A stretch of 64,000 nucleotides of DNA from the NCBI GenBank assembly GCA_047495785.1, contig JBLDXI010000050.1, positions 310,001-374,000 of the forward strand. The letters run 5' to 3'. The DNA is from Lepidodermella squamata. Taxonomy: Eukaryota; Animalia; Gastrotricha. Below, piece by piece: positions 2,309 through 52,987 of this stretch. Made by a program: the position numbers and the translations under genes. The first letter of the stretch is position 1. Every line of letters begins with the position of its first letter. A model generated the notes under the pieces. That model was not told the origin of the DNA, made no database searches, and worked only from the letters and a program-made list of their open reading frames with translations.

Positions 2309-3102
2309 AATATGAGATTGTGCTAAGAGAATGCGAGAATTGCCGGGGCCCGGGGCTCGAGCTAAATATTTCCGCGAGTCCGAGAGGCAATATTCCTAAG
2401 TTTATACATCGTGCGGGGAACAAATTTCGCATAATTAGTATTGCTTTTGAAGGAATTCACAATAATGAATCATTTATTGTATATATTATGAAAACTGGGC
2501 TGTTCCTTTCGTGTTTATATGTATACACACGTGATTTGTACAACAAATAATGCGGGTACGTTGAATTTATATTCATATAGTGCAGGTGTATTTCATATTT
2601 CGAAATGAAATCCTGATTCATTTTAAGCATGCAGTGATAGAGGATTAATCCTGCAATCTTTAATCAGGGTACAGGGGGAAGGGTAGTAAATCCTTGGGAC
2701 TAATAGAGATGGACTCGAAACTGAGCGAAAAAGGTTCTGAGGACTGAAAATAATCCGTTTCGTGTGCGCCATGTTTTCGAGGCAAAAAGTCGTCGCAAAC
2801 ATTAAGTTTGATGCGTTAAAGCAGCATCTGCCCATTATAGCGCTAAAAATGCCCAGCGGTACTCGTTAAGGCAACTATAGCCAAGCCCGTAATAATCATA
2901 AATCAAAACTGTTTAGAAATTTGGAAAGAGCAACTCAAGACGCGTGCATTGATATGAAAATTATACCGAAATGAAGAAATATCAGTGTTTTATTTCACAA
3001 GAAATAATAATTGCATACAATCATTAAACTTTTATCACGCAAAATGGAGTTTGTAAATAATTCAGCCATTTTCACTTGGATTTAGGTTTTGATTTTGATT
3101 TT

Positions 3103-6100
3103 TTAGATAGATACGGGTTTTTTGAGAGATGATCGTTGTGGCCAGCCAGGCACGACCGCAAACTCATGATCTTTCGCATATCTCACTATGCGCGATGCGA
3201 AAACACAGCGGACTAACTTCAAGATAGCCAGCTTTCTTTGGGCGGAAATGTTGGGCATCGAATTATTCAAGAGATACTGCTCGAATTCTTTCGTCAACAA
3301 GCGAGAGCAGTTATCGGCACTACAACAAAGGCCGAGTACTTGAAGGACGTCGCCATGCGGTCGCACCAAGCCACCGCGTGAAACCTCGTCGATATAGTTA
3401 TTCAGTTCAATGTTTCGATTGTCATTGTCTTCGCACCTAAGGCCTAGTCGGCGGCTGATGAAGCCAGCAACGTAGCTGAACGATTTGTAGTTGTTCTTTA
3501 GATTGCGAGGGAGAGCAACTTTCACCAGTTGTACAGACTTAATTCGCTCCAGAGCCGCTTTCTTGCAAACCCTTGCTGCGACGATTTGAATAGCGTCGTG
3601 GTCAACTCCATCGATGTTGGCTGCCCTTGGAATGCCGAAGTGGGAGCTGCACATTCGCAGGTGAGCCGCGTATACCAAGACGTCAAAAACAGACGGGTGG
3701 CTTTTAGAGCCGCCACACTGGCGAAACTGAGCGAAGAGCTGTTCCGCTCCGTCTTGGTTGAACCTATTCGTCATGACGACCTTGACACCTTGCGATAGTA
3801 GGCAGGGGCGTAACTAAGGGAGGGCCAGGGGGGGCACCGGCCCCACCAGCTGGAAAAATACCCTCGGGGTACCACAGGGGGGACCCTTTGGTCTGAAAAA
3901 TTCGGGGCCGGAAAGATGTGCTGGCCCCAAGGCTGGCCCCACCAGTTTGGTAGACCTAGTTACGCCGCTGATAGTAGGAATTTGCTGAGTTTGACGATAT
4001 TCTTAGTAGCCTCGACCATTCCACGAAATACATTCTTGGGCCAGGATGTGGAACGTTTTCGTTTTGCGCCATTTTTATCAACAATTTCGCGATAGTTTGA
4101 TCGATTGAGATTTTGACAAACTCGAATTTTCCGTAGAAAATCGTTTTCCAGCCATTGAAATCGCGGATCTTCGGGATCAGTAAAAGGTCGTAACGTCGGA
4201 TTTTTACTTTGCGCACACCGTTTGAAGGATGATGAATTCAGAATATCGAACCATTTGTCGAAGACTACTAACAAATCGGCCATCGCAGTTGCATTCTTCT
4301 TATCGAATGTTGACGAGTAGTGCAAAACAGCTCGGGCCATCGAACGGGAGAAAACTTGGACCGCCAGGGCCGTCCGCATTTTTTGCGGGGCTCGCTTGTT
4401 TTTCTCGATTGTAAATAGGTGATGATGGGTGATTTTTCGGATCATTCGGAAGAACTGCTCAATATCTTCGTGGAACGCATTTTGCAATAGCTTCCATTTG
4501 AAAATTCCGCCACCAGGTAATATGAAATCGCCGTTTATGAGGCCGTTTCGAGCACACTGCGCGCGAAGTAAAAACCTTTTTCGTTATAAATAAATTGGAA
4601 ACAAGCTACCTACCTTAATCAGATGTGGCACATCCGGAATGATAAATACTTTTTGGCCGGGCATTGTTGGGTGATCGAACTCGAGCTGTTTACTGAAGCC
4701 ACTATCAATCATCGACCATCGACGAATCATCGACGAAACTGCTTGACTGCCGATCGCGGCCATGCGTCGAATTGTCTCAAGTAAAGCATCCTTCATGAAA
4801 CTAGCCGAAGCATTATTTGTAACGGGATAATTGGCCGTATTTATGAGCAACCGGCATGCGGCAAATCGAATTACGAAACTCAGAACCTTCGTAGCTGGTT
4901 TCGTCGGGTTGTCCATCGCCATGCCAACAACGAGCCCTTGCCGGTTGGGCACTGGGCGGAGGGTGCCCGATACATGGACTTCATCCATCATCACATGACA
5001 GAACCTGAAGTCCACGTCAGGCATCAACTTCATCTGGGCATCAAGTAAGGAGTAGGCAGATTCTGATTGCCCGCCTTCGTATTCTACAGGAATTAGTCGT
5101 TGCAACGTTCGTTCGCAAGGCAAAATCATCATCCGCGATCTTACGATTTCGTTGTAAAGTGAAGGGCCACGAAGGTGCATTCCGAGGGCATATCGCAGAG
5201 TTAGAGGTGAATACCGCCGGCCTCGGGCGTCGAGAACATCGCGCAAACGTTGTTGTTCTGCCAGGAACTTGTCAAGCTCTTCATTTGAAACGAGATTTTT
5301 TGGAAGGAACACGCTACCCACGGGTAAATTGTTGACATTCGCCTCAGCCTCGACCTCGTCCATTGCAGTTTCCATGGCTATTTCAGCGATTTGCTTTTTT
5401 AAAGACATTCCAACAGCTATCGACAGCGGCGACTGAGTCTTCAGCTTTCGACCACATCGTCCACGGTAATAGCTAGCTTTGCTTATAGCATTCTTCAATT
5501 TTCGTTTAAGTTCGACGGCTTCTTTCTCAGCTTCAATCTTCGCAGCGGAAGCCGCGGCGATTTCACCCTCTGCTTTACCCAAAGCCACGACAAGATTTTT
5601 CTTTTCTTCTTCCAACCTAGCGATATCATCTTGGCTAGGAATGGCTCGTTTCGGTTTAGGTTCAGCAGTCGATAGATCGAATATTGGCGAGAAATCGATA
5701 GGTAATACCCGTTTACGAGCCGTTGAAGGAACTGATAAATCCATGGCAATATCTGCCGAAGTCGAAATCGCTACGGCAACTCGTGATTCCGAAACTTGAG
5801 CCGATCCAAGCTTGGGTAATTTTATTAACCAATACCCAGAATTACTGCCAGGGCCATTATCGGTGGCAATCTCAAACACCACATCACCCGGATGGGATAG
5901 AGGCGATGGTGACGTGAGGGGCATTTGCGAAATAGGCGCGGCATGGGTCGAATCATTCGAAGGCTGGTCAACAGAGTTGTTTTCATCAACAGAATCAGGA
6001 CAGCCGTTGATAATAGGCCGTTCGCCCTTCGGTACATAATTCTGATTTTTGTTTTTTCCTTTAGGTTTTCGCCCAATGCACTTGCTTTTCGATTTACGCG

Positions 6101-6104
6101 GCAT
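3103..6104 (-). pseudogene. P-element/THAP9-family transposase, disrupted by a MITE (intron 4557-4613)
   Basis: Motifs LPCERTL, MMDEVH, PDVPHLIK|CARNGL (restored by a 57-nt intron), KMRTALAVQVFS and TNRFNQDGAEQLFAQFRQ. Removing the MITE and one TSD gives a continuous ...SKFLLSQGVKVVMTNRFNQD. Confidence 0.88.
3803..3970. mobile_element. 168-bp hAT-type MITE inside the P transposase
   Basis: Termini CAGGGGCGTAACTA...TAGTTACGCCGCTG. 8-bp TSD ATAGTAGG at 3795-3802 and 3971-3978. Confidence 0.9.
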
Positions 6105-8034
6105 TCATCAATAATATTCTAAAACAATTTGTAACGATTCAAAAATTAAAGCCGTAATTAGAAAATATTCAAAAATATTAGATAACGCATAACATAATTT
6201 ATGAAACAGCTCGCTTCGCCAAAGGCAAAAGGCAATGGCCTTTCATGACAAGGCCCGATGATGAAGAGGCATATTAAAGTTGTTGATTTAGCAGAAAAGT
6301 TGCCTTTAAAGCACCCATAGTGACTTGTATCAATGCATTCGTCAGGAAACAAGCTTTCCGAATATTCAAGTTACAATTAAAAAATTTTTAAATGAATTCA
6401 CCAAGCTTTCCTTAACTTAAAAAACGACCAGAAAATCGCGTCATAATGGGCGGATGCAGATTTTTAGGCCTTTATTATTGTTAATCCGCTGCTTTTCGCA
6501 CTCGTGCGACAGCTTGTGAGTTTTTCAACGCTTTTTCATCCAACTCGTTGGTCAGAACATTTTTGTATGTGTTTATCAGCAAGTTTCGAGTCCATATCTA
6601 TTAGTCCCAAGAGTAAATCCTCTAGTTCGCCATAGACAATAGAGTCGACGCCCAGGGCGATGGCGAAGCGCCAGATCTAGCCCAATTCAAATGCAACCGA
6701 AGAATTCATTGATCATGGATGCTATTGATATTCATTTTTGTAGATAGGATTTTTACGAGGTTTTTACGATTTACGATGATCTCACCCTTAATGGTTCATC
6801 ATCTACACTACAGCTTAATCTGCAACACTGTTACAGACATATTTTGAAAGAAAATCGATAAAATTTCGCTTTATAAATAATTGAACTGATCGACATCTGA
6901 AAAAGGTACGAAAACACTGGTCAGAACCGAAATATTCAAACATGCGAGTGATGCAGCATTTTGCTGGATTAAATGGTAGTTCATCGACGCTACAACCGCT
7001 ACAATAGCATTTGATAAGAGAATTTGATAAGAGAACAGCCGCAGCGGCAGGAATCGGGTCGACCGCCGCTAACGCCATCACGAACTTCAAGTCCCTGGCA
7101 TCACTAGCCTCGCCTATTTCGATATAGAATTGCCGAAAGATGTCACTTTCAGCGAATTCACGAATTCACCCTGGAAGAGATTGATATAAATGTGATTCCA
7201 TAGGATTTCCAATGAGCCATGCGGCTAATAATGATTAGGATGGCGTTGCGGATTCCATAAGCGTTGAGTGATGTTTAAGCTTTTCACAAACTTGAAGCTC
7301 GTTTTCTTCGTTCCTCGAGCTCATCCTAGACTGATCAAGTAGTTCGTCATACAATAAGAAGCTAACTGTTAACGAAGTAACGCTTAACACCTCATGAAAT
7401 TGCTCTTTTCACCGTGTTTTGTCGACTAGTACCGAGCATTTCCCGTGCTCTCTTATTGACCAAATCTGCAGTGATTTTAATTTGACGCGATTTTACGAGT
7501 TCGCTCAGAACAAAATTACTTGGTGATTGGAAGCAGCAGGTACTTTCCGTCTGGTATGACTATGGGCCGAAAGTTTTATGCGTGAAACACGTCTCAAACA
7601 ACGTCGCCGCTGTTGGTGATGTAAATGATGCAAATTTAGGGCTGACTTCAACGCGTCAATTGCGTCGAGGAAAACGTCGACGTAGTCTAATTTTTCGGAC
7701 CCGGGACCCAGCCAGATTCGGACCCTTCTCCCTTCGGCGACGGCGCCATAGTTGTCTCAGAACGTCGACTCGTCAAGCTGCTTGTCGACTAACAACTAAC
7801 TGATAATGAAGTAACAAGAAACATTTGAACTCTTCCACGTATCGACAAGTCGTTTTCTCAGTGTCACTTCTAATAACAATTTCATTAACGTGTAAACAAT
7901 AAACTGCTTAATGTTTAACTAGTAATTTATGGAAAGGTGTGCAATGGGTTCCCCCGACGCTACTGTAGCAGCTATGCTGCTGCTGTTGCCAATTAAGTAA
8001 ATACGGTTTTTGTCATTTATTTTATTCTATTTTA

Positions 8035-39676: not shown

Positions 39677-41014
39677 TGAACAAATGAACAAATGAAAATG
39701 TTTTATTTACGTCCACCTTCGGCTAAAAGTGATGGTAATATATATACAAGCCTTACCCGTGAGGGTTTAGGGGACGGCTGACGACGAGAAATCAGCTTCA
39801 GGAACAGTCGCGAACAATCTGCTTTTTCCCATGAATTCATAATTTTCTATATTGTTACATAGTAGCTGCCATTCTTCCCGGTCTCTAGCTGTTACTTCCG
39901 CCAATTCTAAATCCGCAATTTTGTGAATTTCGATGCGTCGCATCAATAAGGTTGATTTACGGGGTTGCCCTCGTTTTTTAGGTTCATTAGGATGCCCCTG
40001 ATACGTTTTTCATGTATATAAAAAATTTTGATTTTTAGAAGGCTTCTTCGGAGGCAGTCAGACCATCGGGTTGGCGGCCTGCCGCGACGCAAGTACCAAC
40101 TCGGGTCGACTGCTTTCCAATAATACATAATACTCGTGAGACTTTCAGGGTCATATTCGTCCTGTCGAATTATATGGCCAAAATATTTCAGACGAAATTT
40201 TTCAATCAATTTACTCAATTCCATTACGTCGCAGATCAGTCTAATATCAACATTAGGAATATAATCTGTCCTAAACAGACCCATAATTGTTCTAAGCCAT
40301 CGCATAAAGGTGACATTTAACCTTTGCTCTTGTTGGGTGGTCAGGTTCCAGGTTTCGCAGGCATAGGTGACGGTAGGAATAACAACGCATTTAAGGACTT
40401 TCAATTTCGTAGCTAAGCTCACGTGTTTTCTATTAAACATAAGTTTATTGAGGGCACCAAAGCAGCCGCCAGCTTTTGCTATGCGTGCCTTGATCTCCTC
40501 GTCCATTTTCCCGTCAGAAGTGATGATGCTTCCTAAATATTTGAAAGACGTCACTTTTTCCAAAAGTTTGCCGTCTAATTCAAGTTGGTAGTTTCTATCC
40601 TCACCGATCACCATGTATTGTGTTTTACTAATGCTGATTTTCAAGCCTAGCTCCGTACATGCCTTATTGAAAACATCCAATAATAGTTTAATTTCTTCAT
40701 GACTCATATCTATTAAAGTTCCATCATCCGCGAAAGCAATCAGGTTCAAAAATTGTTCAGTATTAATAGGGAAGCCACCTGGGGTGTCCATCAATTTTCG
40801 GCAGATTTTATCGAACGTTGCGATGAAGAGTAGCGGAGACAAGGGACAGCCTTGCCGTAAGCCCCTCTTCACCACGAGTTGATTATTTATTTTGACTGCT
40901 ACTTTGTTACATTTATAAAAGCTTTTAACAGCCGCAATAAGGTTTGCATCGACACCTAGTTCCTCGAGCGCGGCCCAGACCTTCTCGCGGTCGATCAGAT
41001 CGTAGGCCTTCTCC
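39677..41014 (-). mobile_element. 5'-truncated non-LTR retrotransposon (RTE-like) with reverse transcriptase C-terminal half
   Basis: ORF 39943-41019: EKAYD, GLRQGCPLSPLLF, AFADD, FKYLGS, YACETW, RLKYFGHI. 3' tail of CATTTGTT repeats. 12-bp TSD AGCAATCGAAAA at 39665-39676 and 41015-41026. Confidence 0.92.
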
Positions 41015-41026
41015 AGCAATCGAAAA

Positions 41027-41212
41027 ATTTCGGGGAAATAAATAATGTGCGTGCCATCGCTATTATTTTACTTGTGCGCGCAGGGCATTTTATTGAAGGT
41101 GTGCGGGTCAAGTGCGCGCGTGCGCGGCTTCAGACGGACGGACAGACGGACGGACGGACCGACGGACGGACAGGCAATTTTGACAGTATAGTACCGGGTT
41201 TCACCCGGCACA
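41027..41212. mobile_element. Helentron/DINE-like non-autonomous element end (target of the LINE insertion)
   Basis: (GGAC/AGAC)n microsatellite at 41131-41172 followed by the stem-loop CCGGGTTTCACCCGG. Confidence 0.5.
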
Positions 41213-41452: not shown

Positions 41453-42416
41453 CTAAGCGGTGGCGCCGCAGGTTTCAATACCCGCGATATTATATATGGT
41501 AGCAGTGCCAAAACCCGGTGTTTTTTTGGCATCTGGAGTGACACCGGCAAGTGCAGTGCAGCAACCTGCGAACGTAGCGTATTGATAAGCCGTAACGGAT
41601 GCCGCCTGGCATATTATAATTTAAAAGACAATTTATATAGATGAACAACAGAATGGATGCTCACCAATCCACTAGCTCCTTGTACATTAGTAGAACTGCT
41701 AGCAGTGTGGGGGAAACGTACACATGACCCAACAGCTGCAATAGTTGCAGCTGCACCTGTTATTTTGTATGGAGTCGCATCCAATGCTCCAATGCATGTC
41801 AGAATTGGCATTGCATTACTCGGCTGCGGTAGTGCTTCGTATCTGATATTGGCAGTTGTCGCAGTTGTGGCACCACAGCATAGTGCAAATGTGCTGAAGG
41901 TATTAACTGAGTCAGAAGCAATCTATCCACATCAAACTCCAAACTAATATGATTAGCTGCACGCAAAAAATAATTACCGTAGCAGCAGTAGGTGCTGTAA
42001 TGTACTTAGTACAAATTGTGGATCCAGTTCCGGCTTCGTTATGACAAAATTTGACAGTTTTAGCAACCCCAGTAGCATCAGCGGCAGCAGACCCCTGAGT
42101 CGTCATTGAGCAAAGCTGGTAGAGTAGCTGGTATTGGGAGTCATTGGATGAGAAAAATAACATCTCGATTATGATAATGAGGGATTTTGCGGATTACCGT
42201 AGCTTGGCACGTCTGACCATTTGTTGCACACTGATTGTCGGTTTTGGCGATACAATTCTTGGCGGTAGTATCACAGATACTAGGAGTCGCTGCGCATTGT
42301 TGATTTGCGGCGCAACCAGCGCTGCCCGTTGGGCACGGGGTTGTCGTCGTCGACGCAGGGCAAGCTGTGGCTGCGGCACAGGCGGCAGCGATTATCGCCA
42401 GAGTAAGGTAAGCCAT
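41453..42416 (-). CDS. Secreted Cys/Thr/Ala-rich protein, copy 2 (multi-exon)
   Basis: MAYLTLAIIAAACAAATACPASTTTTPCPT; CVRFPHTA; same terminal-exon structure as 14174-15089. Confidence 0.75.
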
Positions 42417-43902
42417 CTGAAGACTTGTTATCAAGCAAAGAAGAAGAGGCTGTTGCTCTTGGAACAATTCCACCAGGAATTAAATGCCGCTACGCATCTT
42501 GTCAGACATACTTTGTGTTAACCTCCATGTATATTTTCAAGTTATGACAAGTTTTTAATACTATTAAGGGAGAAACAGGCACCATGGCTGACCGGAACAA
42601 CGTCCTGGTTTATCGATTTTATATCGAAGTCCCTCGGTCCATGTCAATATTTTAGATTCAATGCGTTACCAAGGCGTTCAATTTTTCGAGTATATACGAT
42701 ATATATAAGATATTACGTGCGGGGCTTTGGACTTGGCTTTAAACGCAAAAGCATGTTGTGGCGCGTGAATGACATGACGGGAAGTAGTTCCGACTGACAC
42801 AAGCATCAGCTAGTGCAGTATGATATGCGCAAAATAAGCTCTACGGGATACTTGCTTTTAATGCGCTCATTTCAATGTGGCGCTGGGGGATTATTTAATG
42901 CATTTTTCATCTTATTCCATTTTTATTCCACCTCAAATCTCAAATTGGAAAATCTGTCACGCCGTTCCGGGGAATTCTCTCATTGTAAACTTGTTCTCAA
43001 AATACTTCCGGTCGTGGTCAGTGGATGGATTTTTTGGCCACATTAACTTCATAATCAACAAGCAATCAAGCAACTCGCTCGGTTGGGTCTTCTCGCTGCA
43101 TATTTAACGGCTCACATTAATCCCAAGCAATATAAAAATCACCATCCTTCGGCATCAGCCACCTCACCCTGAGCTCCGTGCTCCGTCATGGTTCTCGGTC
43201 AGCCATTATAGTTCGGTATACTCCTGTTACTAAACAAGAGAACTCATATTTTCCTTGAAAACACCTGTTTTCTAAAGCCTAGAGCTATTCATCCCTTCCC
43301 GAACTGAAATTTTTGGGTAAAATTGATGTCAAGCCGTGTAAAGCCAAATAATTGCGGGTTTTCGGAACTAAACGGATGTAAATGGTCGAAATTTTGTTGA
43401 TGAAAGTAAATGTAAGGCCTGTTTTGGCGATGTATTTTGTTGTAAGGCTCGAAAATAGTGGATGTCTTAACTCTTTCACTGCCAGAGTTTTCTCCCGGAG
43501 ATTTTTTTCTCACGTGAGTTTTTCTCCCCGGAGAAACCCAACTTTCACCTAGCGAGATGCTGGAATAGCGATTTCGCGTTTTGTGTTATGTTTGTTCAAG
43601 GTTTAAAATAAACAAAACATGCGCGTTTATCGCCGCTGTTAGCTGTTATGCAAACAAATCGGGCGCGCCTTGGGTGACTCTCAAGTGCGACCAGTAAACA
43701 AAGACGCGGTCTTCGCCCTCGCTGTTGAATGCGTAAATCAAACTTGAAGCCTGTTTTCGAAACGTTATTATTTGCGCAAACCGCCAAGTAGTGAAAATTC
43801 AGGTGAAAATAATTCAGGAGTTATCAAAAATCATTGGAACAAAAACATTTATTTCAAGCAACAAGAACAAAAAACTGATCACCACGCACAAAGCACAAAT
43901 TG

Positions 43903-44676
43903 CTAATTTTTCGCCGATTTTTTCTTCGACTCGTATGCTTTCTTTTTACGATTACACTCTGCGAAATTTTGGCAAATAGCACGTCGAATTAGGAAAAAAT
44001 GATCGTATTTTTGCATTACAAGTTTTGTTACATCGTCAATCAAATCCGCATCATTCCAAACTGACGCATTGCTAAATTGCCGGGACCGACTTTCACATTC
44101 TTTCAAAATTCTTTTCGCAAACAAACAAGGTTTATCTTTATGCATTTCATAAGCCGATTTTATGATTTCTTGCTCCAGCACATGCGAACCTAACAATATC
44201 ATGCTATTTGTTTCATTATCACCAGGCAGGTCGGCGAAACTTCTTGCGATCCATTGAGCGTGGGAGTGATTTTCATTTGTTTCCGATTGACGCGCGTCAC
44301 GCCGAAAAACGAGCCGATGAACCTGTCGAAGCGGCGTAATTTTAGACGCTGCGTCTTTGAGCGGTAGAATTGCGGATACAGCTGTTGGCGGCGCTAACGC
44401 CGACGTGGTGCTTTGTTGCAATGGCGTTGAAGAGCTTGAGGCGGAGATCGATTCCGACTCGCTGCCGAAGTCATACACGCCAATTCGAGAATCGCTCTAC
44501 GAATGTGGAAAAAATGCGAAAATGCTGACGGATCTAATTTTTCAAGCGACTTACATCGGCCGTTGAACCGCTCTCTTCAAATCGGCTGGTTCCATAGAAT
44601 TCTCGGTTTGTCTCCCGAAAAGCTAGGCGATGCCTCTCGACCACAGTAGAAACTAAATTCGTAAATATTTGCATTC
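43903..44676 (-). CDS. Cargo gene 1: Ser-rich protein with possible C-terminal BEN-like domain (intron 44497-44554; 5' end unresolved)
   Basis: 58-nt GTAAGT...TAG intron in frame. Helical C-terminus LFAKRILKE...DLIDDVTKLV...IRRAICQNFAECNRKKK. Confidence 0.4.
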
Positions 44677-45047
44677 CTAAAATAAAAAACAAAATAGTAC
44701 AGCATCAGACTTTGTTTTACTGGAGCTAAACGATACAATCAGCAATTATTGAAAAGAGGTACTCAAATTTAGCCTTCAATGAATAAATGAAATGAACGAA
44801 ATTCAGGCAAAGCCAATAATCAAAATGTAAAAAACATCGTCGCGAATGAGTGAGACGGACGAGTTGAAGAGAAAGGCTGCTGCCGAAAGGAAATTGTTTC
44901 TCGCTACCGTAAAATACTGAAGGGTCAATTATTTTCAAGTTATCCCAATTTTGCAAATTTTTCACAAATTTTATGTCGAAATTCCCAAAGTAGCGCAACA
45001 AATTAAAAAATTTCCTTCCGGCATAGAAAAAATCGAAAAGGTTCAGA

Positions 45048-45998
45048 TCAATCCTCGGATTTCTTTTTCGACCTTGTTTTGACAGATGCAACATCAGTTT
45101 TTCGCGGGGTTAAATCGCGCCCTAGTTTGCAGAGATAAGTTGAACTGTAGTCCCAGCAATGGCTAAGCCTTTTCCATAAATTATGAACAGGCGACCATAT
45201 TTCTCCAAAAATCAAGAAATGGATGATGGATAGCCAGCGAAGCAAAATGGTCAATAGATACTCTCCAAGAAAATATCGCCATTCAAACCCACTTTTTGAT
45301 TTGAGAAAAATTTGGAGAGCGAACTCGGCGAAGGCAACAAGATTCAAAGATATTAGGAATTTTTTTCGTCGAAATAATGTCAGAAAAATATTGTGAAATA
45401 TGTAGAATGAGACTCGATACCTCAAGAAAGACTGTTCAAGCGAAGCGTTGTAAAAGACTTGAGAAGTAACAGCGACGAAAAGCGTCGACTCTTTGAAATA
45501 TGAGAAAAAATCAATCACGGGGCCTTCAATTGGAAAGCAATCAACTACTGCCTGAAAAAAGTGTCTAGCGAGTATGTAGAGAGGAGAATTTTCTTCCTTG
45601 AAAAATAAAAAATAGCTACATATTTCGCGAATTTCGCCAACGAAAATCATGTAAGTGAGCCAGTCTAAAACTTCGAGAGAATTTTTCAAGCAATTAATTT
45701 GGCTGGCGAATTCTGTAGGCTGTGTCATAGGACAATTTATAGCTTTTGTAGAGTTTTTGGCCGACAGATAGCATTTGAGAGCTGACTCGGCGACATTTTG
45801 CCACGACATCACTGAGTTTGCGCACAACTTTTTCGCGTGTTCAAGCCATCTATCGACACAAGAATTGTTCTGAGCTTTCAGCTGGTCATAATAGTATCGA
45901 CCTGAAATGACCTGAGTTGGCGATATTTCAGTTATTTCCAAGCAGCACGCAGGCATAATAAGCGCCGCCGCAAAAAATACATGAAAAAAGCCTTTCAT
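45048..45998 (-). CDS. Cargo gene 2: KAR5/GEX1/Brambleberry-like membrane protein, intronless
   Basis: Signal peptide; six-Cys domain SC-x11-C...A....KCY...C...CLK...W..Y..F......IC; 2-3 hydrophobic segments; basic tail. Confidence 0.7.
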   Translation of the reverse strand: MKGFFHVFFAAALIMPACCLEITEISPTQVISGRYYYDQLKAQNNSCVDRWLEHAKKLCANSVMSWQNVAESALKCYLSAKNSTKAINCPMTQPTEFASQINCLKNSLEVLDWLTYMIFVGEIREICSYFLFFKEENSPLYILARHFFQAVVDCFPIEGPVIDFFSYFKESTLFVAVTSQVFYNASLEQSFLRYRVSFYIFHNIFLTLFRRKKFLISLNLVAFAEFALQIFLKSKSGFEWRYFLGEYLLTILLRWLSIIHFLIFGEIWSPVHNLWKRLSHCWDYSSTYLCKLGRDLTPRKTDVASVKTRSKKKSED

Positions 45999-46179
45999 TA
46001 CAAAATGACGGAAATTCTGTTTGAAAAATTTATCTGGTGACTGGTGACTTTTTGGAGCTGGCTATTTATTGCTTGAACGGCTCATCAGGTATCCGGAAAT
46101 GGCTTTGGCAAATATTTTCATTTCAATTTAATTCCTTTCTAGTCCCACGCCGTTGACATAAAATACGTGATCCTCACTC

Positions 46180-46390
46180 GAGCGTGTGATTACGCACCGG
46201 GCGCGCACCTGTGGAGAAAGCGCGCGCGCGCACCTGTGGCGAGGCGGGCGGTTGTAGTGCGCGGTCAGTAATTACAGACTTTGAAATGGCACCGGTGGGC
46301 GTCGCGGCCGGTTGACATGCCCTTGGAGCCGCTCGGCTGTTTTGGCAGACAGCGTGACCGCGGTCGGCTGTGACGACGCCGACGTAATGA
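46180..46390. promoter_or_regulatory. GC/CpG-rich putative bidirectional promoter
   Basis: Lies between divergent cargo genes and has two GCGCGCACCTGTGG motifs (46201-46239). Confidence 0.4.
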
Positions 46391-46473
46391 TACAGTAAAA
46401 CGGTTAAAAGGTGACTACAAAAGGAGGAAAGAAAATAAAAATAAGTAAATTCGAGCTAACAAATTTCTGAATA

Positions 46474-47097
46474 ATGTCGACTTTTGACTTCGATATTTAT
46501 TATCAGCCAGGATACGGCATCGTCACCCGTTCAGCGCGGCCGGGTTTGCTTGCTCTATCCACAACAACGACAACGACGACAACAACCGCTTGGTCTGCGC
46601 CTGGTACTTCGACGGCGACATTGCCGACAACTGCGACAAGTGCGACTACAACGACCCCGGCTACTCCCGACTTCGGCAATGTGCTCATGGCGTTGGCGGC
46701 CGGTTTTGGGGCGGCATTGTCGATGTTGGCGCTGACGTGTTCTCTTTTTATTTTCTTCATCTGGTGGTGCTGCTTTCGCCGCAAATACCCTGTGCCCTAC
46801 AAGCCAGGCAACGGCACTGCAGAACAAGGCCTAATCGCAGTTGGCGCTATTGTTGCTCAGCGGCAGGTACCTGCTCGACCTCCTCCGCCGGCTGTTCTGT
46901 CTCGAGCCGGGCCGATTCTGCCGAATCTTCCTCCGATTCTGCCACCGCCTCCAATCGAAGCCACCATTCAGCCTGCCGCCATTCCCGCAATCGTCGCACC
47001 GCCGCCTCCTGTTTTCGTGTTTCGAGCGCCCGTTCCGGCAGCGCCACCTGTTGCGCCAGCTCCGGTGGCGCCTCGTCGCGGCTTCCGCGTGCGGTGA
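46474..47097 (+). CDS. Cargo gene 3: Thr-rich ectodomain, single TM, Pro-rich tail
   Basis: TTTTTT stalk; TM ending IWWCCFRRK; poly-Pro tail. A paralog downstream supports this reading frame. Confidence 0.65.
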   Translation: MSTFDFDIYYQPGYGIVTRSARPGLLALSTTTTTTTTTAWSAPGTSTATLPTTATSATTTTPATPDFGNVLMALAAGFGAALSMLALTCSLFIFFIWWCCFRRKYPVPYKPGNGTAEQGLIAVGAIVAQRQVPARPPPPAVLSRAGPILPNLPPILPPPPIEATIQPAAIPAIVAPPPPVFVFRAPVPAAPPVAPAPVAPRRGFRVR

Positions 47098-47198
47098 AGC
47101 GGTGAATTCCTGACGGCCCGGGCTTTAGCACTGAAAGGCACACAATTTAGAATTTTCAAACTTCGAATTAAAGATTTCAGATTTTTGTCTCTAATTTC

Positions 47199-49751
47199 AT
47201 GGATGCCAGCGAGTGGATCAATTCTGATGAACCGCCTCTACCTTTCCGTTCACCGGAACCCAAAAACTTTAAATCCAGCCTGATTGCGGTCGATTGTCAC
47301 CAGTTAGCTTTTTCCGGCTAATTTTCACCATCGAGTTTCTCGAAATGGTATGCAAGGAAACGAATAGATATGCCAATCAAAAATTACGTCAAATTGGGCT
47401 TAAACCCAACGCCAGAATCAACGACTGGGTGCCATTGACAGTTCCGGAGCTTGAGCGATTTTTCGGTTTATGGCTGCTAATGGGAGTGATTCGAAAGCCA
47501 ACAATCGCAAGCTACTGGACGGAGGACAAACTGATGGCAACACCAATATTCAATTTGACGATGTCCCGAAATCGATTTGAAGCGATTTTGTCAAATCTTC
47601 ATTTCAACAACAACCAATTTCTGGCGCAAAACATCAAAACCGATCGCCTCTATAAAATCAGACCTGTTCTAAACTTCTATCAAAATCGGATGAATGACCT
47701 TTATTCACCTGGCAAAAATCTGGCAATCGATGAATCTCAAGTGCTTTTCAAGGGAAGGCTGGCATTCAAGTCGTACAACAAGGCGAAAAAGGCGAAGCTC
47801 GGTATAAAGGTAAGATAGGTCAAAGGTTCTATAAAATGAAATATATATATATATCAAAATCGGAATGCAATTTTAATTTTAAAGCGGCATTTTTGAGACA
47901 ATTTATGGCCATGTTTTACTTGAGACAGAACCCCACAAAAATCATAAAACCGTTTTGCTTTAATTTTTCATCAAAACGCTAGGCAATGAAAATAAAAAAA
48001 TGAAAAAATTCGAAAATATCAAAATATCTGGAGAACCTTTCCTTTACTTCCTTTACTCCCTTTGCTTTCAGCTTTGCTGTCATTTTACGACTTGGTCATT
48101 TGGCTATAAAAGACATAGAATAAGTAGCCGTTATTTCTGGAATTCTGGAGCAGAAAAACGGCTCAGAAAAATAACAAAAAAATCCGTATATGCGTGAAGT
48201 GATATTCTTGAAAATTATAATACCCAAATCTCGGATTCTATCGGAATAGAACTCTTGCCAATATTTTACTTTCGAAGCCATAATTTTAATTTCGAAGCTA
48301 GGATTTTACATTTTGAAGCCACAGTTTTAATTTCGAAGCTAGGATTTTACTTTTTGAAGCCACAATTTTAATTTCGAAGCTAAAATTTTAAATTTCGAAG
48401 ATCAGGTTCGATCTAGTGAGACTAGAGACTAGTGTGAAAATCTTGGTTTTCAATCTGCTATTTTACAGATCTATATGCTATGTGAGTCATCAACTGGAAT
48501 CCCTCTTCGCTTCCATGTCTACTCAGGCGCGGATAATGTTCAAGATGATATTATTTCTGGCAAAAGCCACACATTTTCAGTCGTGAAATCACTCATCAAA
48601 TACCTTCTTGGCAAGGGACACTCGCTTTTTGTCGACAATTTTTACACTTCCGTCGAACTCGCTAAATACCTATTGGCTAATCTAACTCACCTAACCGGAA
48701 CACTGAAAAAAACCGTGTCGGAAACCCGCCCGAAGTGGTTCAAGCTAGCTTGAAGACAGGTGAAATAATTTGCCGAAGACAAGACGATATCAATGTACTC
48801 AAGTGGAAGGACAATCGCGAAGTACTTATGCTATCGACTGAGTTTGCCCCAGAAATGATTCCGATTACCCTTCCGGCTCGAATTCAACGGGTTATCGAGC
48901 ACAATGAAACGCAAACAGGGCAAAGTTCGGTATATCAAGAGATTGAGGCAGATTCTACCGGAGTGGAAGTGGATTCAGAAGCCAAATTTGACGGCGATGA
49001 TAGCGGCGACAACGATTCTGCCATGTCCAAGTACTTCCTAGCTTCGGATTCAGAGGGCGATAGCGAAGATGGAGAGGAGGAGGATGTTGAGTCTGAAACC
49101 GGCCTGAAGCGCAAACTCGACGACGATGACGATGCGGCACCGCGTATGGGCGAGCCACCGGCTAAAAGGATCAAGACTGTCATGAAACCTCTCATTGTCG
49201 ATCAATACAATAAATCAATGAATGCGGTGGATTGTCACGATCAAAATGTGAGCAAACATATTTGAGCTATTCGTAAATATTTTATCTTTTCACATTTTTT
49301 CAGGCCGCGTACTATGATGCAAATAGGAAGTCGTATAAATGGTATCGAAAAATTTTCTTCAGGATTCTTGAGAGCGGCATGATTGCTTCCCATCAATTCT
49401 TCAAGTTGCAAAGCGGAAATACCTCTCGGATGTCGGATGTCGCTTCTTGAATTTCGCAAAGCAGTCATCAGAGCTCTGATCGGAATGATAGGAGAGGATG
49501 GCTTAGTGGCGAGTTCTGAGTCCTTCGATTCATCAAAAAGCAACGATTCTTCCAGCAGCAGCTCAAAAGCCGAGATTCATGATCTTACCAAAATGCCTGG
49601 TAAAAAAGAGCGCCCTTGTATGAACTGCGGCGGCAGGGTTTCACATTGGTGCCTGGCTTGCCCACCGAAAGAGGACGGTTCTCATCCTGCTTTTCACATG
49701 AACACCTGCTTCAACAAATGGCACCAGATGAATGTGTTCAACAAGCGATAA
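47199..49751 (+). pseudogene. piggyBac (PGBD-like) transposase, frameshifted (introns 47810-48468 and 49248-49303)
   Basis: ETNRYA, MSRNRFE, DRLYKIRP; catalytic IDES, VDNFYTS, AVDCHDQ; KWYRKIFF; C-terminal Cys-rich domain. Lesions: frameshift and stop near 47250-47272, short A-run at ~48706-48712, 7-bp duplication TCGGATG near 49426-49440. Confidence 0.9.
48262..48400. repeat. Minisatellite (~20/21-bp subunits, ~41-bp period) in transposase intron 1
   Basis: Repeated TTTTAATTTCGAAGCTAGGA / TTTTAC(A/T)TTTTGAAGCCACA. Confidence 0.8.
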
Positions 49752-49914
49752 ATCAACTATTGATTCCGAACGCCCGGTTACTGCCGGATTTGCAGTACTG
49801 CTCGAAATGTCATGATCATCGACGAATACAACGAAAATTACTACAACGACTTGTTCTGCGCGACTATATCGGCGCGATAAAATTGCCAACAGCATCGACG
49901 GTTGCTGCCGAAAA

Positions 49915-50211
49915 ATGAGCGGCGATTTCGTCGCAATCGTTGCTACATTGCCTGGTGGTTTTGTCACGACCTTGGCTGTGATCGCCCTCGCCTACGGCGT
50001 CATTTTTTGCGCCGCTCGAAAGCTCATTCCCAACAACTGCGCTGCTGAGCGCTGCCTATTCGCTGTTGGTGGCGTTGATGCCCATACCGCAGGCCGACGT
50101 CGTGTTTCTCGACCACGTCCTTCTATCCTGCCATTACTCCGGTTGAGCTATCAGCTTTTGAACCGGCCGTCATCGCCGCACCGCCGCCGCTTCCCTGTCG
50201 GAAAATCGTAG
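49915..50211 (+). pseudogene. Diverged paralog of cargo gene 3
   Basis: DFVAIVATLPGGF..IPNNCAAERCLFAVGG..VSRPRPSILP aligns with DFGNVLMALAAGF..KPGNGTAEQGLIAVGA..VLSRAGPILP. Its upstream Thr-rich part is broken. Confidence 0.6.
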
Positions 50212-50909
50212 GCTCAGTTGGGGTTTTTGGCCTCAGCCCTCTTTTTCAACGCCAACTTGGCCTCAGATAGGCTATTCCAAAGTTGACATTTTTTGCTTGG
50301 CCTCGCGGCAAAATGGCCAACCTCCAAGTTAGGCTTCGATAGGCATTCTGAGATTCGGCCGAAAATGACAAAAAATCGCAATCTCGAATTTGGCCTTATC
50401 TAGACTTTGCTCATTTTTTCAGAAATTTGACGAATTGAACCTTTTGCAGATCAATTTGAAATTGGCCTCAGATAGGCTTAAACATTGGAGGAGCCTAAAA
50501 TAGCAAACAACACGTGTTTTTCATGGTTTTCACGACTTGTGATTTTTCAGTCATTTTGTTTGCAACTGCATTTATCGATTTTTTTCATCGATTTCCTCCA
50601 GCAAATCTGCGGCTTCCTTTTAAGTTCTATGAAGTATTCCAGCATGAATAAAACATTGCGAGTCTCGGAATAATGTCATTCATTCTTCAATGGCCATTGA
50701 AATAAGTAGTAATACGCTACCAGTCCTAGAGCTTTTGGTAATGCAAGTACTATGCTTTCGCCTCCTAGTAACCCATGTACTATGACCGCATGCCCTCCCT
50801 ACCCTTCTTCATCACTCAAGAGCCCCTTCAAGGGGGGGCGTTGCTAGGCATCACGATCATGTCTATATAAACCTCTATAGGAAACTGTTCTTTCTTTTAT
50901 GTTGCTTCA

Positions 50910-51707
50910 ATGTTTTACCCACAGTTGCTTTGGTCTATACTTTCCGAGGATGCTAAGCCCCCACTTTCGACACCATTTACGCGAAAGATAGAGGCACCCT
51001 CAACCTGGTCGCATGAAATCAGCTGTTGTGACTGTTACTCATTACCATCATCGAACGGCGTCGTTAAGCCTGGGGCTATTTGTGTTGTTTCCACTGGGCT
51101 TTGTTTGACTCCTCAACTTCTCAACTACAGCAGCCTTTTCATCGAAGGTCACTTCGAGTCTCTTATTCCTGGTCTTCAATTAACCGGCAGCAATCGCCTT
51201 ACGCTGCGAAATTTTTCATCACGTGAACTTGTCTTTGAGCTGGCAAATATCACCAGTTTCGATGTTGAACTGTCCAACATGCGACCTTTTATTCGCATCG
51301 CCTTCTTGTGCTATTTCACCCCGGTTTCTTCTGTTATTTTGCCGCCACGTTCCTTTTCTGCGGAGTGTATTGATGTTGCTGAGGCTGCTTATCGTCAAGG
51401 GACTCTTCAGTCTTCTACTGGAGTTGATCTCCCCATGTCGTCTTCACTGCCGAATTACGGTCGTCTTCGAGATACATCCAAGGTGCAGTTACAAACGTCC
51501 ATGGTTTCCTTTCGAACAAAGTTACCGCTGAGGTTTCAATGCCCCCGATGTCTGCGATTTTACGCCAAAAAGGGGAATCTCAAGTATCACCGCTGTAAAC
51601 CTGTTGCCAATGCACCCACTGATGCCCCACGTGAGCATGCAGCAGAACTTCAGCTTCATTCATCAGGGCTCATATCATCAGACTTGTGTTTATTTGATGA
51701 AAATTAG
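50910..51707 (+). CDS. Degenerate dUTPase-like domain fused to a zinc-finger-like motif
   Basis: LSEDAKPP, CDCYS..VKPGAICVVSTGLCL, LTLRNFSSRELVF and IRIAFL parallel dUTPase scaffold positions, without RSG or DxDY. C-terminal FQCPRCLRFYAKKGNLKYHRC. Confidence 0.55.
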   Translation: MFYPQLLWSILSEDAKPPLSTPFTRKIEAPSTWSHEISCCDCYSLPSSNGVVKPGAICVVSTGLCLTPQLLNYSSLFIEGHFESLIPGLQLTGSNRLTLRNFSSRELVFELANITSFDVELSNMRPFIRIAFLCYFTPVSSVILPPRSFSAECIDVAEAAYRQGTLQSSTGVDLPMSSSLPNYGRLRDTSKVQLQTSMVSFRTKLPLRFQCPRCLRFYAKKGNLKYHRCKPVANAPTDAPREHAAELQLHSSGLISSDLCLFDEN

Positions 51708-51721
51708 GACTATGAGCCACG

Positions 51722-52987
51722 ATGAATTCCATTGCTAGTAATAAGGCTAAACTTCTAAATAATTTATATTTTAATAAAACATTCCCTGGTTCATTTGCCG
51801 GTTCGCAGTCCTTCTACAAACAATTACGACTAGCTGGCTATAAACATATTTCCAAAGCTGAGGTAGTCAAATGGTTGTCTGATCAACGGCCCTATAGCAT
51901 TTACAAGCAAATTTCAACACGCTCAACTCGGCAATTTAACCCTATTATAGTCACTCGAAAGAACGACACCTGGGCGGCTGATTTGATGCAAATCGCTAAC
52001 GTATCCCAGGAAAACGATAACCTCTGCTACGTTTTATGTGTGGTCGATGTTTTTTCGCGATACGCTATGGTTTATCCTCAGCTTGACAAAACTGGCGCGA
52101 CTACGGCTTCGTCGTTTTCAAAACTCTTGGAGGCTAATCATCCTAATAAATGCACCAAGCTCCTGGTTGATAGGGGTAGTGAGTTCTACGCTAAAGAATT
52201 TCAACAGTTGGTTACAAGTTTCTCCATTCACATGTATTCAATCCACTCATCTGTGAAGGCCTCTCCTGTAGAAAGATTCATTCGCACTCTTCGCCAAAAA
52301 ATAGCCAGACATTCCATGTTTTCTGGGTCTGTACGTTTTGTAAACACTTTGGACGACTTGGTTGATGGTTATAATCGAAGTTATCATTCTGCAATCAGGA
52401 CTTCCCCGGCTATTTTATGGGCGTTGCCCTGCTCTGATGATTCCAACCCATCGGATGTGTTTCACCAGTTTTCCCGAGGAAACATTGATGTTTTCGTTCG
52501 CCACGAGGATCCTTTGAACTATCATGCGGCTGTCGCTTCCCTTAAACGTAGCTCCGCCAACTTTAATCGCACTAACGACAGGCAAACTAAAATCCGACAA
52601 CCATGTTTCAAAGTTGGCGATTCAGTGCGTATTTCAATGTCTAGAGGTTTGTTTGACCGAAGTCATAATGCATCCTTTTCAGAAGCCTTTTACACTATTC
52701 GGAGCGTTACTAGAGCGTCTCCTCCTCTACGGCCTTTTCATACTTACCACCTGAATGAGTGGAATCCTGCTACAGGTCTTTTCAATCGTAAATTGTTAGG
52801 AAGTTTTTACGAGCGTGAATTGCAGCCTGTTAGTCTCCCCTCGTCGTTTCCGATTGAGTCAATAGTCGAGCTAGGCAAAGGCAAACGAAAGAAGCAAGTT
52901 AAGGTACGTTGGCGTGGCTATGGACCAGAGGCAGACTCTTGGATTGACAAGTCAGAGCTCGGGGACATCACCTCAACATCGAACTGA
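51722..52987 (+). CDS. Polinton retroviral-like (RVE) integrase with C-terminal chromodomain
   Basis: YFN..PGSF; WAADL, VDRGSEF, VERFIRTL (DDE); YNRSYHSAI; FKVGDSVRIS; GSFYERELQ; VRWRGYGPEADSWI. Confidence 0.95.
   Translation: MNSIASNKAKLLNNLYFNKTFPGSFAGSQSFYKQLRLAGYKHISKAEVVKWLSDQRPYSIYKQISTRSTRQFNPIIVTRKNDTWAADLMQIANVSQENDNLCYVLCVVDVFSRYAMVYPQLDKTGATTASSFSKLLEANHPNKCTKLLVDRGSEFYAKEFQQLVTSFSIHMYSIHSSVKASPVERFIRTLRQKIARHSMFSGSVRFVNTLDDLVDGYNRSYHSAIRTSPAILWALPCSDDSNPSDVFHQFSRGNIDVFVRHEDPLNYHAAVASLKRSSANFNRTNDRQTKIRQPCFKVGDSVRISMSRGLFDRSHNASFSEAFYTIRSVTRASPPLRPFHTYHLNEWNPATGLFNRKLLGSFYERELQPVSLPSSFPIESIVELGKGKRKKQVKVRWRGYGPEADSWIDKSELGDITSTSN

Follow-up and report, generated by a model that had tools for sequence, protein, structure and literature searches.

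A putative decayed piggyBac element of unusual size enclosing orphan reading frames in the gastrotrich Lepidodermella squamata

The stretch of DNA considered here, 64 000 nucleotides from contig JBLDXI010000050.1 of the gastrotrich Lepidodermella squamata (positions 310 001–374 000; referred to as a whole as the window), contains a predicted transposase gene of the piggyBac superfamily, a single piggyBac-type terminus upstream of it and, in the interval between the two, three open reading frames (ORFs A, B and C), with a fourth (ORF D) on the far side of the transposase (Table 1). On balance, these features are probably the remains of one oversize piggyBac element that has decayed. A preliminary description of the locus, made from the letters of the sequence, had proposed a multi-gene piggyBac element, and the strands that it gave for the five genes (A and B minus; C, the transposase and D plus) proved to be correct. 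The composition of the window is that of eukaryotic DNA (42 % GC, introns of about 55–60 nt), and its CpG observed/expected ratio of 1.11 indicates that the genome is not CpG-depleted. A single public sequencing run, X1, was found to contain DNA of the locus; its contigs were placed on positions 43300–49299 at a likeness of at least 80 %, and the X1 sequence differs from the source of the window. None of the RNA runs among the public runs checked contained genes of the locus, and tblastn against phage records gave no match.

The transposase gene was modelled by combining three-frame translation, tblastn with six relatives and inspection of splice sites. The Pfam family DDE_Tnp_1_7 was recognized on three plus-strand ORF pieces, among them exon 2a (E 1.1e-12) as well as exon 1. 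Exon 1 also aligned with residues 109–268 of the piggyBat transposase structure 9c0f (E 3.7e-30) and with T. ni piggyBac (6x67), and the exon 2 pieces had no sequence match in the PDB. The motif regions of the three catalytic Asp residues (AIDES, VDNFY and NAVD) are present, and a Cys/His-rich C-terminal tail is visible in exon 3, with no profile or structure match to the tail. We therefore identify positions 47199–49751, from these sequence features, as a predicted piggyBac superfamily DDE_Tnp_1_7 (DDD) transposase gene with two introns, the frame of which is broken in the haplotype represented by the window. The intron-containing transposase of the preliminary description is upheld as to introns and family, with the qualification that this copy of the gene is broken.

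Four breaks were found in the frame as it stands in the window. Two lie in exon 1: near 47242 the frame changes, and at 47270–47272 there is an in-frame TAA, inside a region that still aligns to relatives; homology to the relatives P0025 and P0035 continues across both. The third is a frame change, placed by tblastn between 48708 and 48711, at a run of seven A residues (48706–48712), and the fourth is a 7-bp tandem duplication of CGGATGT (49427–49433 and 49434–49440) in exon 3. When X1 was compared at these positions, an extra T after 47242 was seen in 142 of 215 depth, i.e. about two thirds, and the A-run was longer by one residue at full depth, so that the frame was kept. Because X1 restores the frame at the A-run, at least one of the lesions in the window would be either peculiar to the strain or due to an error of assembly. 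A tandem repeat (48257–48400) with units of about 40–55 bp (TTTTAATTTCGAAGC...) lies within intron 1; X1 showed raised depth and length variants for it, and it was the sole match recovered when positions 43–51.2 kb were compared with the window by BLAST.

An exhaustive HMMER search of 1.84 billion representatives with exon 1 returned 13,237 relatives, none above about 47 % identity, and the best match in a word-based search was 46 % identical. The genomic contexts of the relatives P0001, P0025 and P0007 were either uninformative or like those of single-gene elements of the ordinary kind or of genes embedded in a host. Among short relatives, the one nearest to exon 1 (46 % identity) lies on a metagenome contig (L001, positions 2874–6211), where the DDE domain is immediately preceded by an ORF of 325 aa with no Pfam match; a right end, CCCTTTTAGTCCCG followed by TTAA, lies about 0.8 kb past the transposase, and no left partner was found on that contig.

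The terminus consists of TTAA followed by CTCTTTCACTGCCAG at 43467. Candidate termini were scored with a matrix built from 19 independent piggyBac-type termini, that of the locus itself being excluded, which was applied to all sites next to a TTAA on either strand of the window (672 in number). The site at 43467 came out on top with 16.6 bits, and the runner-up scored 5.6 bits, which is chance level. The left terminal inverted repeat (TIR) occurs once in the window and is identical at 13 of 14 bases to the left TIR of coral CMITE family VI, CCCTTTCACTGCCA (PMC2872659). The same source states a general CC[C/T]T terminal motif and TTAA duplication, and documents imperfect TIR pairs among piggyBac-type elements (PMC2872659, Tables 1–2). 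The 19-mer TTAACTCTTTCACTGCCAG, which includes the TTAA, was found at 30 metagenome loci, 14 of which have an inverted second terminus of the same type, then TTAA, at a distance of 194–445 bp. Judged by this structure, the paired-terminus loci are evidently classic piggyBac-type MITEs (miniature inverted-repeat transposable elements), some of them with imperfect TIR pairs; neither a transposase nor a homologue of ORFs A–D was found at any of the 30 loci. Several unrelated metagenomic MITE families (L003/L028, L014/L025, L016 and L006/L010/L019/L022/L024/L027/L029), 194–445 bp long, bear the terminus CTCTTTCACTGCCAG at TTAA, and one family couples it to a different right end, CCCTTT(C/T)GCTGCC. 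Since CTCTTTCACTGCCAG is common to unrelated MITE families, the terminal motif appears to be conserved far beyond any single element family. The sequence at 43467 is thus evidently a genuine piggyBac-type terminus, as the preliminary description had held.

Depth of coverage in X1 provides a further view of this end. Over the first ~230 bp inside the terminus it amounted to 323x, against ~200x further in, and a variant contig omits positions 43533–43639; together these indicate that the X1 genome has one or more further, related copies of the left end. On the outer side, a repeat of about 160 bp (43307–43467), which has ATGT-rich internal motifs and neither TTAA nor TIR of its own, abuts the TTAA and reaches ~780x, compared with ~200x for single-copy sequence. 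Its other copies start near 43307, end at 43467/43468 and have differing continuations, and this divergence fits a junction of unrelated sequences at that point. Because TTAA is absent from the contigs of the flank repeat, they do not represent an empty site.

The three ORFs between terminus and transposase are orphans at the sensitivity of our searches. ORF A has a Ser-rich middle and a helical C-terminal half; beyond it on the minus strand, AATAAA is seen by eye near 43851–43856, ~150 bp from the repeated left-end segment. In a language-model atlas of proteins ORF A scored 0.87 with BEN clusters, sharing 161–164 features where 170 are typical of true members. To an E value of 10 it matched neither Pfam, including BEN (PF10523), nor the PDB, and no homologue was recovered by a word-based search of 5.8 billion proteins; a single-sequence AlphaFold 2 (AF2) model, with a mean confidence (pLDDT) of 49, was unusable. 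The minus-strand gene of the preliminary description can be retained, here modelled in two exons, and its BEN-like label is a modest lead and not a finding. ORF B has a hydrophobic N-terminus, 11 Cys residues and two C-terminal hydrophobic segments. It, too, had no match in Pfam, Tht1 (PF04163) included, even at E 10, no homologue in the word-based search of 5.8 billion proteins and nothing meaningful among PDB sequences. The KAR5/Tht1 cluster was at rank 6 in the atlas with a score of 0.81, within a range often reached by shuffled sequences, and the single-sequence AF2 model (pLDDT 44) was too poor for a fold search. The ORF itself and its strand agree with what had been described; the label of Brambleberry-like, a Tht1/KAR5 assignment that Pfam does not recognize, is a faint lead and not a finding.

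ORF C was correctly described as encoding a Pro-rich protein with a transmembrane-type segment: a Thr-rich head is followed by one such hydrophobic segment (residues 67–102) and a Pro-rich tail. It matched no Pfam family even at E 10, all of its atlas matches were below 0.83, and exact look-ups of ORFs B and C found nothing on record. Its stop codon lies 100 bp upstream of the transposase ATG. ORFs B and C are separated by a divergent spacer, which had been called CpG-rich. The spacer is present, with a GC-rich core, and the richness in CpG is weak, an observed/expected ratio of 1.44 versus 1.11 for the window being an unremarkable excess. X1 has an 11-bp insertion here, CGCACCGGGCG, after 46192, at full depth, which resembles a tandem duplication of the adjoining sequence. 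The differences listed between the window and X1 comprise three synonymous and two conservative changes in ORF B and the same numbers in ORF C, and the combined six synonymous to four conservative changes give a weak hint of constraint. X1 contigs arriving from both sides break at 47081/47082, five codons before the ORF C stop, and continue into unrelated sequence; these loose ends suggest either an insertion allele in X1 or the boundary of a paralogue. ORF D, downstream of the transposase, had been listed as a second membrane-protein gene. Its N-terminal hydrophobic segment is present, there is no Pfam match even at E 10 or other support for a gene, and its status as one is doubtful.

Table 1. 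Features of the piggyBac-type locus, with positions in the 64 000-nucleotide window
Feature	Position	Strand	Basis
TTAA target site, left end	43467–43470		Sequence reading; X1 flank-repeat contigs diverge at 43467/43468
Left TIR CTCTTTCACTGCCAGAG, conserved core 43471–43485	43471–43487	+	Unique in window; matrix score
Subterminal region of the left end, containing short palindromes TCTCCCGGAGA, CTCACGTGAG, TCTCCCCGGAGA	43488–43700	+	Sequence reading; X1 depth
ORF A, 237 aa; exons 44555–44674 and 43903–44496, 58-nt GT..AG intron	43903–44674	-	Gene model
ORF B, 316 aa	45048–45998	-	ORF and hydropathy
Divergent B/C spacer, 475 bp, with 65 % GC core 46170–46370	45999–46473		Composition
ORF C, 207 aa	46474–47097	+	ORF and hydropathy
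Putative transposase exon 1: N-terminus with the initial part of DDE_Tnp_1_7; LAIDES motif with first catalytic Asp	47199–47809	+	Pfam, E 5.9e-46
Putative transposase intron 1, 659 nt, GTAAGA..ACAG	47810–48468	+	Splice sites
Putative transposase exon 2: VDNFY and NAVD motifs, long acidic insert	48469–49248	+	Pfam profile positions 160–240 and 293–322
Putative transposase intron 2, 55 nt, GTGAGC..TCAG	49249–49303	+	Translation and splice sites
Putative transposase exon 3: C-terminal Cys/His-rich tail CMNCGG...CLAC...H...C...WH	49304–49751	+	Translation and tblastn
ORF D, 98 aa, hydrophobic N-terminal segment, Arg/Pro-rich tail (doubtful as a gene)	49915–50211	+	ORF and hydropathy
Stretch with several GGCCTCAGATAGGC-like motifs	50212–50704		Lies before integrase-bearing neighbour; no terminus-like site

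A right end for the element was sought by several routes. Exact and three-mismatch searches of the window with the TIR and with its generic form, an inverted-repeat finder, comparison of all TTAA pairs and per-site scoring across the window all failed to reveal one, as did short-word BLAST of the left end against 47–64 kb and of 46.0–47.3 kb against 49.7–51 kb. The 100 bp from the ORF C stop to the transposase ATG contain no terminus, nor does the stretch from the transposase stop to about 51 kb, and the X1 loose-end sequences, when searched for in the window as a possible right flank, gave no match. The target site is therefore represented by the TTAA at 43467–43470, with its right-hand counterpart not located in the window and possibly beyond it, and, with neither a right TIR nor a second TTAA, the element cannot be delimited. 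The unit of at least 7.2 kb envisaged by the preliminary description has no measured length. No closer pair of TIRs belonging to the transposase itself was found in the window, in agreement with that description.

Contigs of X1 tile positions 43300–49299 at ~200x, with heterozygous pieces at ~100x and fixed differences to the window of 0.7–1.3 %, from which it follows that the stretch is single-copy and present on both haplotypes. Extra depth was limited to the left flank (43307–43467), the first ~230 bp of the element, the intron repeat and a few short patches, and the genes of the locus are not repeated in X1 at 80 % identity or more. A large piggyBac family, as first proposed, is not supported by these data or by the distance to the nearest transposase relatives. 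As regards the first refuting condition of the preliminary description, linkage between the genes and the other copies of the end is lacking at detectable identity, a pattern that internally deleted derivatives would also show. The empty TTAA site that was to be looked for in other haplotypes was not seen in X1, and nothing indicates that the element can still move.

The neighbourhood of the locus is evidently rich in transposons, to judge from the coding sequences recognized there. Beyond the downstream side of the element, Pfam identified an integrase with rve and chromodomain (51722–52987), preceded by a 265-aa ORF with a C2H2-like motif, the two within 50910–52987, and a TATA-like box lies at about 50866. 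Base skew shifts from about 50 kb, and the composition is strand-skewed over about 50–57 kb. On the upstream side are a minus-strand reverse-transcriptase ORF fragment (39943–41019; RVT_1, E 1e-20), a GGAC/GACG microsatellite beside it (41130–41175) and, 1 kb away from the element's left end, a minus-strand gene with short introns (41470–42420) for a secreted-looking protein rich in Cys, Thr and Ala.

Comparison with known systems places the locus in part within and in part outside the range of described elements. With canonical piggyBac-like elements (T. ni piggyBac, piggyBat and coral AmiPB1-6) it shares the TTAA target, a terminus of the CCYT/CTCT...CTGCCA type, the DDE_Tnp_1_7 core and apparently the C-terminal Cys-rich tail. 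Whereas in those elements usually a few hundred non-coding bases separate the end from the ATG, here the distance is 3.7 kb and includes three ORFs; the locus further differs in its two introns, its long acidic insert, its single end and its state as a broken single copy. The terminal 14–15 bases at TTAA are identical or nearly so to those of piggyBac-type MITEs (coral CMITE family VI; metagenomic L003, L014, L016 and L006), but these are two-ended, non-coding and 0.2–0.45 kb long, while the end described here precedes kilobases of coding sequence and has no partner. Teratorn, a medaka piggyBac fused to a herpesvirus that carries many extra genes between its ends, provides a precedent for additional genes inside a piggyBac element (PMC5601938). 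Teratorn, however, is ~180 kb long, multi-copy and active and has recognizable viral cargo, in contrast to the three or four orphan ORFs of this locus, which has no viral genes in the span and no sign of mobility.

The reading that we favour, and consider probable if by no means assured, is that the locus is a decayed, immobile, single-copy, oversize piggyBac, the body of which includes ORFs A, B and C and the right end of which has been split off or lost. We infer that the terminus at 43467 and the transposase at 47199–49751 belong to one element. The terminus points towards the transposase ATG 3.7 kb away, and in 64 kb there is no other such terminus and no other piggyBac transposase; as the subterminal sequence is also low-copy in X1, adjacency by chance is unlikely, and, given the density observed, its probability for a solo MITE end was put at a few per cent. 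As no other credible terminus stands between the left end and the transposase, the simplest layout places A, B and C inside the element, perhaps with D after the transposase, and the tight packing within the span (from the ORF C stop to the transposase ATG, and from the probable ORF A poly(A) signal to the left end) likewise speaks for one element, as does the synonymous lean of the listed differences in B and C. The cargo status of the extra ORFs is an inference from position alone. Such ORFs would have been carried passively whenever cut-and-paste transposition moved the element between TTAA sites, and the GC-rich spacer that B and C share may have driven both. The right end, which would read CTCTGGCAGTGAAAGAG followed by TTAA, would most likely have been separated by the insertion of a Polinton-like element starting near 50.7–50.9 kb, the integrase-bearing neighbour being the obvious candidate for such an interruption; otherwise it may have been lost.

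Several observations weigh against this interpretation. The left TIR is without an inverted partner anywhere in the 64-kb window, and, as the second TTAA of the element was not located, there is neither a target-site duplication nor a measured length; the Polinton-like boundary invoked to account for this is placed approximately. In X1 the locus is single-copy at 80 % identity or more and both haplotypes are filled, with neither an empty site nor a joint that skips the element in evidence. No relative of ORF A or B was found, and hence none beside another piggyBac transposase, and the contexts of the nearest transposase relatives look ordinary. Moreover, the break in similarity at 43467/8 could reflect the flank repeat's own end.

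When such a locus is interpreted, it is important that a chance neighbourhood is considered, in which a piggyBac-type MITE, now truncated, would have left its solo left end at position 43467, ORFs A, B and C would be ordinary host genes, and the transposase would be an old and separate relic, both of its own ends having been lost. The left TIR is of a kind typical of short MITEs in other organisms, the extra depth and the variant contig in X1 span ~43471–43700 alone and give way to single-copy sequence before ORF A, as would be seen for a short non-autonomous family, and the region is transposon-rich, with the reverse-transcriptase fragment on one side and the integrase-bearing Polinton-like element from ~50.9 kb on the other. 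This account nevertheless needs a truncated MITE without a right end, one that landed in the correct orientation less than 4 kb from the sole piggyBac transposase of a window in which termini number at most one per 64 kb and the end is low-copy, and it makes host genes of three ORFs without detectable relatives, which would be unusual for conserved ones. We regard it as rather unlikely, while taking it seriously. A different partition of the same sequence arises from a TTAA at 46404–46407, which follows CAGTAAAACGG (inward, CCGTTTTACTG) and is turned towards the left end, 2.9 kb away. A two-ended, non-autonomous element of 2.9 kb (43467–46407) would then carry ORFs A and B alone, inserted 66 bp upstream of ORF C and beside a separate, end-less transposase relic. 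CCGTTTTACTG and the opening 11 bases of the left end agree at eight positions, imperfect TIR pairs are on record for piggyBac-type elements (see above), and the pattern TTAA-C-Y-N-TTT-NN-CTG matches the window at these two facing sites alone, against 0.03 expected, though it was drawn up after the site had been seen. With the independent matrix, 46404–46407 ranked eighth of the 672 sites at 1.4 bits, which is chance level; it is without the CTGCC kept by all natural partners, shows no subterminal similarity to the left end and is passed through by an X1 contig, uninterrupted and at full depth. The site was accordingly demoted as a right terminus, and the 2.9-kb element is improbable.

Presence as a single copy, shared by both haplotypes and by two differing samples, would also be in keeping with a domesticated, piggyBac-derived host gene lying among other host genes, the nearby terminus being unrelated; the regions of the catalytic motifs and a visibly Cys-rich tail are retained, and one frameshift of the window is absent from X1. 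Against domestication, the frame in the window is broken at several places, including the 7-bp duplication and the in-frame stop within a conserved region, the differences listed between the window and X1 in the transposase are three synonymous and three non-synonymous, and no orthologue above 47 % identity was found, so that we hold this explanation to be decidedly improbable. Finally, the locus might be an artefact of assembly, in which unrelated pieces were joined into a chimera. The stretch is not spanned by any single X1 contig, the loose ends at 47081/47082 interrupt it, and homopolymer lengths differ between the window and X1; yet X1 contigs tile it evenly with 0.7–1.3 % differences and run across the exon boundaries, the spacer and the interval from A to B, and an artefact is very improbable indeed.

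Returning to the reading of one decayed oversize element, the locus, being fixed on both haplotypes and common to two differing samples, would be a dated fossil. A single, broken, one-ended copy cannot by itself answer whether the extra genes help the element. It is conceivable, and we raise it tentatively as a doubtful extension, that this animal harbours a piggyBac lineage which, while its copies diverge, stably keeps an accessory module made up of a BEN-like DNA binder together with small membrane proteins (one of them possibly like KAR5), and that the locus described here is a decayed, Polinton-interrupted member of it. Eukaryotic cut-and-paste transposons normally encode a transposase alone. 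If such a lineage exists, it would constitute a multi-gene eukaryotic cut-and-paste transposon with conserved functions other than transposition, and the retention of the extra genes would raise the question of whether they aid nuclear entry, chromatin targeting or self-regulation of the element.

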